A DNA stretch of 63,050 bases, the filler included, from Octopus bimaculoides (taxonomy: Eukaryota): the NCBI RefSeq assembly GCF_001194135.2. It is 8 parts of 8 records of this genome, joined end to end, with 100 filler letters (N's around TTAATTAATTAA, not from the genome) between each part and the next. Parts side by side here need not be neighbours in the genome. Positions count along the whole stretch, not along the records: positions 38,347 to 53,934 come from NC_068981.1; 7 more parts are not named here. The stretch is one strand, 5' to 3'. Below, in pieces: positions 48,608 through 49,490 of this stretch; position 1 is the stretch's first letter; each line of letters starts with the position of its first letter. The notes below the pieces were generated by a model that was not told the origin of the DNA, ran no database searches, and worked only from the letters and a program-made list of their open reading frames with translations. A program made the position numbers and the translations under genes.

Positions 48608-49490
48608 GGCATATGGCGTAGTGGTAAGGAGCACGGGCTAATAATCCCTAGATTCCAAGTTCGATTCCAGGCAGTGACCTGAATAATAATAATAATAATA
48701 ATAATAATAATAATGATGATGATGATGATGATGATGATGATGATGATGATGATGATGATGATGATGATGATGATGATGATGANNNNNNNNNNNNNNNNNN
48801 NNNNNNNNNNNNNNNNNNNNNNNNNNNNNNNNNNNNNNNNNNNNNNNNNNNNNNNNNNNNNNNNNNNNNNNNNNNNNNNNNNNNNNNNNNNNNNNNNNNN
48901 NNNNNNNNNNNNNNNNNNNNNNNNNNNNNNNNNNNNNNNNNNNNNNNNNNNNNNNNNNNNNNNNNNNNNNNNNNNNNNNNNNNNNNNNNNNNNNNNNNNN
49001 NNNNNNNNNNNNNNNNNNNNNNNNNNNNNNNNNNNNNNNNNNNNNNNNNNNNNNNNNNNNNNNNNNNNNNNNNNNNNNNNNNNNNNNNNNNNNNNNNNNN
49101 NNNNNNNNNNNNNNNNNNNNNNNNNNNNNNNNNNNNNNNNNNNNNNNNNNNNNNNNNNNAAATATATATAACATACAGAAAATTGCACTACTGGGTACTG
49201 CACACATTCTACGCAAAACACTATACAGTAAACATAAGAGCACCACAGCAAACCACAGCACATACCCAAGGCGCACAGAGCTGCGCTCGGTAGTGAAGTG
49301 AAAGCACGTTATAAAAATAAAACTACTGAACAATAATAATAATAACATCAAAAAATACCTTAGGAATGAGAACCCAGGTTCGAAATTTCCCCAAGACACC
49401 TGATGAAGGCTGGAGGGTATATCAGCCGAAATGTTGTGTTAACAACAAACAAGATGAGGACAAATATCCATCAAATGTAAATAATGGAAA
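48608..49490 (+). mobile_element. tRNA-headed hammerhead element, copy 3, interrupted in its (AAT)n by an R4/Dong 3' fragment
   Basis: Head at 48608-48682, then (AAT)(GAT)n, gap, Dong end QKIALLGTAHILRKTL + UTR at 49160-49345, then the tail resumes. Confidence 0.8.
49395..49440 (+). ncRNA. Minimal type I hammerhead ribozyme motif (best-preserved copy)
   Basis: GACAC CTGATGA A GGCTG gagggtatat CAGCC GAAA T GTT^ GTGTT. Stem I GACAC/GUGUU, stem II 5 bp, loopless stem III. Other copies have C at the T position (49432). Confidence 0.7.

Follow-up and report, generated by a model that had tools for sequence, protein, structure and literature searches.

The question raised by this stretch of Octopus bimaculoides DNA (the window, 63,050 nucleotides (nt) including filler) is whether a short repeat dispersed in it is a short interspersed element (SINE) that carries a ribozyme and, if so, which class of retroelement copies it. 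A reading made from the sequence without database searches, referred to here as the sequence-only reading, had described a family of repeat tails resembling the minimal hammerhead ribozyme (min-HHR) of Penelope-like elements (PLEs), with an (AAT)n tract and a tRNA-like head upstream, and had proposed that the element was mobilised by Penelope and processed by its ribozyme. The piece of the window analysed here was positions 38347–53934, in which three tail copies were recovered where that reading had placed them (49395–49440 and 41439–41484 on the plus strand and 41278–41322 on the minus strand); a fourth reported copy (31997–32034) lies outside the piece. We think it somewhat more probable than otherwise that the repeat represents a short non-autonomous Octopus SINE family, in which a tRNA-like head has been joined to a Penelope-type ribozyme module, and that it is copied by Penelope machinery.

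The limits of the tail units were set by BLAST with a composite query, which placed unit A at 49338–49485 (plus strand), unit B at 41351–41529 (plus strand) and unit C at 41234–41359 (minus strand). The three units were 93–96% identical to one another, and no further copies were found in the piece by BLAST or by a covariance model. Copy A is preceded by an (AAT)4AA linker (49332–49345, plus strand) and consists of a body, CATCAAAAAATACCTTAGGAATGAGAACCCAGGTTCGAAATTTCCCCAA (49346–49394), that includes a B-box-like GGTTCGA, a minimal type I hammerhead with an intact catalytic core (49395–49440; descriptor match, 99.1 bits with the covariance model) and a 3′ tail, AACAACAAACAAGATGAGGACAAATATCCATCAAATGTAAATAAT (49441–49485), of which the first ~30 nt are kept across species. 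Within the hammerhead, helix I is formed by 49395–49399 and 49436–49440, and helix II by 49408–49413 and 49422–49427. The CUGAUGA box occupies 49400–49406 and is followed by an extra A at 49407, whereas GAAA (49428–49431) is followed by UG at positions 15.2 and 16.2 (49432–49433), U16.1 (49434) and U17 (49435), such that cleavage is predicted between 49435 and 49436, all on the plus strand. The body, hammerhead and 3′ tail of copy B span 41390–41529 (plus strand, 90.4 bits). Copy C is inverted and spans 41234–41359 (minus strand, 86.5 bits).

The majority consensus of the three copies, GACAC CUGAUGA A GGCUG(G) AGGGUAUA (U)CAGCC GAAA CG U U^GUGUU, was the same as that of the sequence-only reading. 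It makes a complete minimal type I hammerhead with a helix I of 5 base pairs (bp), a helix II of 5–6 bp and the G10.1–C11.1 pair, in which helix III is replaced by a loopless palindromic ACGU. The loopless palindrome in place of stem III had been recognised correctly from the sequence, but its pairable part is ACGU and not AACGUU, since A14 and U17 belong to the core or the cleavage site. The sole departure of copy A from the consensus is C15.2→U, which gives a U·G pair in the palindrome. Copy B carries U4→C and G12→A, and copy C carries G8→A and G16.2→A; each also has a single break in helix II. By these changes both are judged to be inactivated. The catalytic core is intact in the consensus, in copy A and in homologous units from three loci of another source (L005, L008 and L009, described below), and broken in copies B and C. 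Differences among the copies are mostly CpG transitions, and as read from them the window copies are dead relics whose decay fell chiefly on CpG sites.

Metazoan PLE min-HHRs have a helix I of 4–5 bp, a longer helix II, an unpaired residue separating positions 9 and 10.1, a conserved G10.1–C11.1, no helix III loop and a palindromic 15.2–16.2 (PMC4209133). Every one of these defining features was present in the octopus motif. The unpaired A at 49407, between A9 and 10.1, was invariant in 11 of 11 aligned units, and the ACGU palindrome was found in 8 of the 11, the remainder being CpG-decayed. A strict min-HHR descriptor was composed after the motif had been seen; it specified CUGANGA, an optional extra nucleotide, a helix II of at least 4 bp closed by G–C, GAAA, pairable 15.2 and 16.2, U16.1, a non-G at position 17 and a helix I of at least 4 bp. 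This descriptor matched the piece once, at copy A, which still satisfied it with its U·G pair, and gave 0 matches in the chance control of 2000 first-order Markov simulations of the piece. For the 41-nt consensus at up to 3 mismatches, 0 matches are expected by chance. On these sequence features, the assignment of the tail motif to the Penelope-type minimal hammerheads, and with it its identity as a ribozyme, is well supported.

Copies elsewhere were sought at the peptide level, using the single open reading frame (ORF) of the tail as a translated probe. A word-indexed peptide search found an exonised copy in LOC115224785 of O. sinensis (MRTQVRNFPKTPEEGWRVYQPKRCVNN...) and an antisense copy in NUP42 of O. 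bimaculoides. An exhaustive representative peptide search gave 53 matches, ~50 of them real, and the named matches of this search were O. bimaculoides proteins; the family is thus present in both species. One match, P0161 (2124 aa), is a bacterial InlB-repeat protein and was rejected as a false positive. The peptide P-[D/E]-E-G-[W/R]-R-x-Y-[Q/R]-P-K-[R/H/C]-C was kept across the 53 units, in ~50 protein clusters, and is the translation of C-CUGANGA-A-GG...CC-GAAA-CGU. Four further octopus copies were available as peptides, namely P0140 from O. sinensis and P0141, P0142 and P0150 from O. bimaculoides, and DNA was retrieved for four of the peptide-level matches. The octopus genome DNA copies in the sample comprised three tails and two heads.

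Two sources of homologous DNA were obtained. The Logan contigs L006 and L007 (runs SRR11869385 and SRR11869394) contained a decayed inverted pair of the octopus-type element, giving two further copies as DNA. The loci L005, L008 and L009, from ENA assembly ERZ21867824, contained tandem arrays of 113–129-nt units with up to 98% identity (L005 9716–10379, L008 10168–10520 and L009 10076–10500), joined to inverted copies. The core of these units is intact (CUGAAGA-A-GGCCGG...CGGCC-GAAA-CG-UU); by their sequence the arrays are young and may be active. The octopus module and the ERZ21867824 units were ~80% identical in alignment, and the ribozyme with the following ~30 nt (AACAAnAAAGATGAGGACAAnAnTCC) was about 80% conserved over 11 units. 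The ERZ21867824 loci had no other repeat in common with the octopus piece. A B-box-like motif, GGTTCGA or GAGTTCGA, is conserved 8–17 nt upstream of the ribozyme in both octopus and ERZ21867824 units (49376–49386 in the window; 9808–9818, minus strand, in L005). Judged by this conservation, the ribozyme and the first ~30 nt of the tail are an old conserved module, common to at least one other animal.

Exonised SINE tails were seen in P0140 (LOC115224785), P0141 (NUP42) and P0150 (dystrobrevin beta isoform X1). The SINE, hammerhead included, supplies the annotated start codon of LOC115224785 and its first ~37 residues, and the C-terminus of NUP42 is antisense SINE. These tails may be annotation artefacts or real exonisations. 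They give the element a relevance to annotation, as it is already exonised in annotated octopus proteins.

The structure was examined in an alignment of 11 units from three sources (the octopus window, L006/L007 and ERZ21867824), from which our own covariance model was also built. Helix I pair 11–52 was CG in eight units, UA in two and UG in one, and helix II pair 25–38 was CG in six, UA in four and UG in one; neither was ever broken. In-register pairing was found in 83% of cells, compared to 13–48% when the 3′ partner was slid by 1–3 columns, and the covariation score was equalled by 6 of 500 shuffles. RNAalifold, run unguided, recovered exactly helices I and II and left CUGANGA and GAAA single-stranded. 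The covariation check proposed with the sequence-only reading therefore gave one compensatory pair in each of the two helices. With the covariance model, copies A, B and C scored 99, 90 and 86 bits, and no other copy came up.

The head of the element, TGGCATATGGCGTAGTGGTAAGG...CCAAGTTCGATTCCAGGCAGTGACCTG, lies at 48607–48681 on the plus strand and has the A and B boxes of an RNA polymerase III (Pol III) promoter. The A box, TGGCGTAGTGG (48614–48624), is perfect and the B box, GTTCGATTCC (48659–48668), matches at 10 of 11 positions. The boxes are 33 nt apart, a spacing that fits the textbook Pol III pattern (quoted in PMC8969392). The composite TGGCGTAGTGG-N33-(A)GTTCGATTCC occurs once in the piece and 0 times in shuffles, which bears out both the box-bearing head and the (AAT)n tract reported upstream of the tail. 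The head is followed by an expanded (AAT)n linker and then (GAT)n (48682–48782), which runs into an assembly gap (48783–49159). Going 3′ from the head come (AAT)n(GAT)n, the gap of 377 N's, a unique stretch of 170 nt and then (AAT)4, followed by tail A. The 170 nt had no match anywhere in the data examined, and the interval between head and tail A (48682–49331) is probably a microsatellite expansion with an insertion.

A shorter arrangement was found at copy B, where the final 22 nt of the head (TTCGATTCCAGGCAGTGACCTG, the same as 48660–48681) are followed by a AATAATAA linker (41360–41389, plus strand) and then the tail. The NUP42 peptide (P0141) reads body-(AAT)9-head in antisense without interruption. 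A full-length inverted element in L005 bears an A/B-box head unlike that of octopus (TGGCGTAACGG...GGTTCAATTC), and the homologous ribozyme follows ~130 nt downstream of this head; the boxes of the head were found once and 0 times in shuffles, and no AAT repeat is present at its junction. Head-tail linkage was thus seen at four independent junctions, in line with the dispersed non-coding SINE-like family originally proposed, and an accidental juxtaposition of head and module is disfavoured because composites recur in two distant genomes. The short-form layout of ~235 nt comprises a ~75-nt head, (AAT)n, a ~50-nt body, the 46-nt hammerhead, a 45-nt tail and an optional 27-nt extension. As judged from these sequences, a SINE-like architecture is well supported. 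We also considered, and dropped, an origin of the body by duplication of one half of the head; in local alignment the two matched no better than shuffles did (p = 0.12).

Exactly at the outer boundaries of the head and of tail A, the 15-nt flanks have TGGAATAAT / TGGAAATAAT in common (p ~0.008 versus random flank pairs). This suggests that head 48607 and tail A entered as a single insertion that was later split inside the microsatellite, a reading that the variable 3′ region of the family weakens somewhat. No repeat resembling a target-site duplication (TSD) was found around the B/C composite.

The arrangement of copies B and C bears on the copying machinery. Copy C is inverted, 5′-truncated at CTTAGG and abuts the 5′ end of copy B (inverted repeats I6 and I7), with a 9-nt microhomology, ATTCC(T)AAG, at the junction (41351–41359). 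Both copies extend to an identical 3′ end, so each arm would have been primed from an RNA 3′ end. Twin priming by long interspersed elements (LINEs) differs, as it inverts another segment of a single copy. Abutting inverted twins were also found in L006, L005 and L009, and tandem partial units in L005, L008 and L009. A 27-nt 3′ extension, TCCTCATCTCTTAAATATAGGACTGAA (41530–41556, plus strand), follows copy B and not A or C, and is also present in L006, where both arms have it, and in the peptides P0142 and P0168. No copy ended in poly(A) or a simple repeat. The hallmarks of PLE integration include heavy 5′ truncation, partial tandem copies, a bias to microsatellites, an inverted 5′-truncated copy abutting the 5′ end and a 30–40-bp extension at one end only (PMC8557442, Craig et al.). 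Judged by criteria from the same source, PLE-integration likeness was found at 41234–41556 of the window and in L006, L005 and L009. The anatomy suggests an insertion pattern consistent with Penelope-type mobilisation, and makes copying by Penelope-like retroelements rather than by LINEs plausible.

The following course would account for the element. Given the promoter boxes, Pol III would transcribe it from the head; the consensus has no run of four T's, so read-through of the whole element is possible. A Penelope-like reverse transcriptase (RT)/endonuclease would then, as the anatomy suggests, recognise the 3′ module in trans, and would leave copies that are 5′-truncated, twinned in inverted orientation or arranged as tandem partial units, with a 3′ extension in some and poly(A) in none. 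Since there is no helix III, activity would be expected only with two modules, which would base-pair at the ACGU palindrome and exchange their helix I strands to give an active double hammerhead. This would cut unit lengths from multimeric or read-through RNA where two modules meet; release of unit lengths has been proposed for PLEs and retrozymes. The double-hammerhead pairing, with swapped helix I strands and an intermolecular ACGU/ACGU, could be written without conflicts.

Several results weigh against a Penelope-copied SINE with a working ribozyme. In every copy 45–75 nt are retained beyond the predicted cleavage site, up to a common end. The copied RNA would accordingly not have been cut at its own ribozyme, which overturns the idea of a ribozyme-processed element in the sense of 3′-end formation of the transposing RNA, and simple ribozyme 3′-end processing of a single SINE RNA is unlikely. 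The double-hammerhead fold scored −20.7 kcal/mol versus −29.2 for the best dimer fold in a nearest-neighbour model, a score that shows feasibility under the model and not preference, and min-HHRs cleave poorly in vitro even as dimers (PMC4209133). No Penelope ORF with RT and GIY-YIG domains was found in ~170 kb of loci, including beside the copies in the window and in L005–L009. ARAGORN did not call the octopus head a tRNA, and the Rfam tRNA model gave no match to the octopus head at E ≤ 10 (111 nt). The promoter boxes of the head claimed in the sequence-only reading stand, and, since no tRNA homology was detected, it is to these boxes that the term tRNA-like refers.

The ribozyme itself was also missed by the Rfam hammerhead models (RF00163 and others), which gave no match at E ≤ 10 to the piece or to copy A (101 nt). 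The intact tandem units in L005 were likewise unmatched, and the negative result would for this reason mainly reflect models that do not cover this class. In the structural alignment few lineages are represented, with only three octopus-genome DNA copies, and the compensatory changes are probably one event per pair; the structural support is real but for these reasons modest. In a peptide-level test of helix II covariation (W/R versus Q/R codons), which CpG decay confounds, the deviation from independence was not significant. In our view the module is most likely chiefly a handle for recognition by the partner enzyme, and the predicted cleavage most likely acts where modules meet, in tandem arrays, in read-through transcripts or in two RNAs held together.

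The element could instead be an ordinary LINE-dependent tRNA SINE with a conserved domain, copied by an RTE or CR1 LINE and carrying the hammerhead as a passenger or an irrelevance. Fragments of apurinic/apyrimidinic (AP)-endonuclease LINEs are plentiful in all loci, several LINE partners are reported for mollusc conserved-domain tRNA SINEs (PMC11481361), and internal or terminal simple repeats are frequent in SINEs. The tail, however, showed no similarity to any LINE fragment in the loci, and there is no poly(A) or simple-repeat 3′ end. Abutting inverted twins with a common priming 3′ end, partial units in tandem and a 3′ extension that may be present or absent are described for PLEs and not seen in target-primed reverse transcription of LINEs (PMC8557442), and reports of this ribozyme type come solely from PLEs and Terminons. 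We regard LINE dependence as unlikely.

It is quite improbable, in our judgement, that the ~150-nt ribozyme-tail unit is a self-standing non-autonomous Penelope derivative, either a solo fragment of a PLE pseudo-long terminal repeat (pseudo-LTR) or a retrozyme-like unit, to which the head is linked only secondarily. Given the preference of PLEs for microsatellites (PMC8557442), such units would have inserted into another, unrelated tRNA SINE at its (AAT)n tail. The 170 nt of unrelated sequence before the (AAT)4 of copy A would fit this, as would the beginning of both informative octopus tails at CATC, directly after AAT, and the headless tandem arrays formed by the 113–129-nt units of ERZ21867824. 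Against it, each of the two heads in the piece has a tail behind it in matching orientation, the TSD-like repeat encloses head and tail A jointly, and the third octopus junction, in NUP42, is contiguous. L005 joins a different head to the homologous module without an AAT repeat, so that composites recur independently. A chance resemblance of a repeat to a hammerhead that was never a ribozyme would agree with the Rfam negative and with a descriptor composed after the fact, but is very improbable in view of the empty simulations, the full set of PLE min-HHR side features (PMC4209133), a core conserved across species and in ~50 clusters and compensatory changes in both helices.

A wider reading than that of a Penelope-copied Octopus SINE is that true Pol III SINEs with tRNA heads, living off Penelope-like elements and not off LINEs, form a widespread superfamily whose conserved domain is the ribozyme-plus-tail block. 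We put this forward tentatively, as a possibility that falls somewhat short of an even chance. If it is true, many 'orphan' animal minimal hammerheads would be SINE tails, and the block would be the first among conserved SINE domains to have an RNA activity assigned to it. By definition, SINEs are parasites of LINEs and are transcribed by Pol III, and Penelope-like elements form a separate retroelement order, whose only proposed dependants are retrozymes, said to be promoterless. A Penelope-copied SINE in Octopus would, if true, give SINE biology a third class of autonomous partner and explain part of the tens of thousands of dispersed min-HHRs, whose function is 'a mystery' according to field reviews. 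It would also provide a small promoter-bearing substrate for probing recognition by the Penelope RT/endonuclease and the role of the dimeric ribozyme. Octopus genomes are rich in SINEs (>10%), most of them unclassified, and the family may sit unrecognised in Repbase or Dfam among these unclassified octopus SINEs.

Exact-pattern scans of metagenome (two patterns), viral and prokaryote-genome collections gave 0 matches. Three fragments of LINE debris were found in the piece: an RT fragment (RVT_1) cut by the piece edge (53498–53932, plus strand), an RTE-like C-terminal fragment (42556–42795, minus strand) and a C-terminal fragment with a 'WNKLP' motif (40977–41233, plus strand), into which copy C was inserted in antisense. 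None of the three is a Penelope ORF. The RT ORFs near the arrays (L009 3162–5246; L005 2061–2579) were considered as candidates and belong to AP-endonuclease LINEs, not Penelope; no RT ORF of any other kind was seen in the ~170 kb of loci. A query with the RT fragment gave a best match of 67% identity, and the loci L001 and L002, from other species, were without element copies.

Another, far commoner SINE-like repeat (core GGCATTAGGAAGGGCATCCAGCTGTAGAAAC), unrelated to the hammerhead family, has at least six copies on both strands (38347–38640, 39960–40280, 44089–44227, 47347–47660, 49805–50160 and 52362–52497), which show 80–94% likeness to one another and usually terminate in (GAT)n or (CAT)n. 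The piece also encodes CDC26 (95 aa) as an intronless ORF at 45380–45667 (minus strand; Pfam PF10471, E = 5e-13), 81% identical to the CDC26-like protein of Argonauta hians. The exact CDC26 product is on record at ~194.65 Mb of chromosome CM046601.1 (assembly GCA_001194135.2), to which a named O. bimaculoides protein also maps, and locus L003, taken from that record, was identical to the piece. The orthologous CDC26 locus of A. hians (L004) had no element copy. Among Rfam matches, MIR9486 at 41321–41440 is the hairpin of the inverted SINE pair B/C and an artefact, and mir-297, mir-3149 and mir-598 (50560–51530; 52540–53300) are (CA)n, (TA)n and (GAT)n tracts.

The closest known ribozymes are the min-HHRs of PLEs, which Lunse, Weinberg & Breaker reportedly treated in 2017. 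That min-HHRs are dispersed in huge numbers and reside in PLE pseudo-LTRs is established, and dispersed solo motifs are treated as probable truncated PLEs (PMC4209133). The octopus motif is like those of PLEs in its type I form, its helices, its loopless helix III and its requirement for a dimer, and the octopus copies are likewise dispersed and individually mutated (Cervera & de la Pena 2014, PMC4209133). It differs in lying in a ~235-nt element with its own Pol III-type head, whereas PLE min-HHRs lie in the pseudo-LTR of an RT/GIY-YIG element.

No tRNA SINE with a Penelope-type hammerhead was found in the literature searched, in which the nearest system was the schistosome SMalpha. The SMalpha and Sjalpha retroposons were reportedly described by Ferbeyre in 1998 and Laha in 2000. 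Like the octopus element, they are short non-coding retroposons with a Pol III promoter and a type I hammerhead, both dispersed and in tandem (PMC6765202). The hammerhead of SMalpha is canonical and efficient, with a helix III hairpin and loop-loop contacts, and is matched by Rfam Hammerhead_1, whereas that of the octopus element is loopless, of PLE type and placed in the 3′ tail; the two were likened by description.

Octopus SINEs named OK, OR1 and OR2 are said to have been reported by Ohshima & Okada in 1994. Conserved-domain tRNA SINEs (CORE, V, Deu, Ceph, Meta and Nin-DC) likewise combine a tRNA-promoter head, a module conserved across distant taxa and a tail. As described, however, these SINEs and OK, OR1 and OR2 are set apart from the present element by domains without an assigned RNA function and by LINE partners. 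Hammerheads were unmentioned in the SINE conserved-domain literature searched, and the core strings were not printed in the literature searched.

Metazoan non-LTR retrozymes, too, are non-autonomous elements with a type I hammerhead, and their mobilisation is ascribed to PLEs (Cervera & de la Pena 2020, PMC7229834; Li, Clavereau & Pollet 2026 preprint); they are regarded as 'SINE-like'. They form tandem repeats, have more canonical hammerheads and lack a promoter of their own (PMC7761336), whereas the octopus copies are dispersed monomers or inverted pairs with a Pol III-type head, tandem arrays being confined to ERZ21867824. The 113–129-nt arrays of that assembly look retrozyme-like, and by their sequence they look like a bridge between SINEs and retrozymes.

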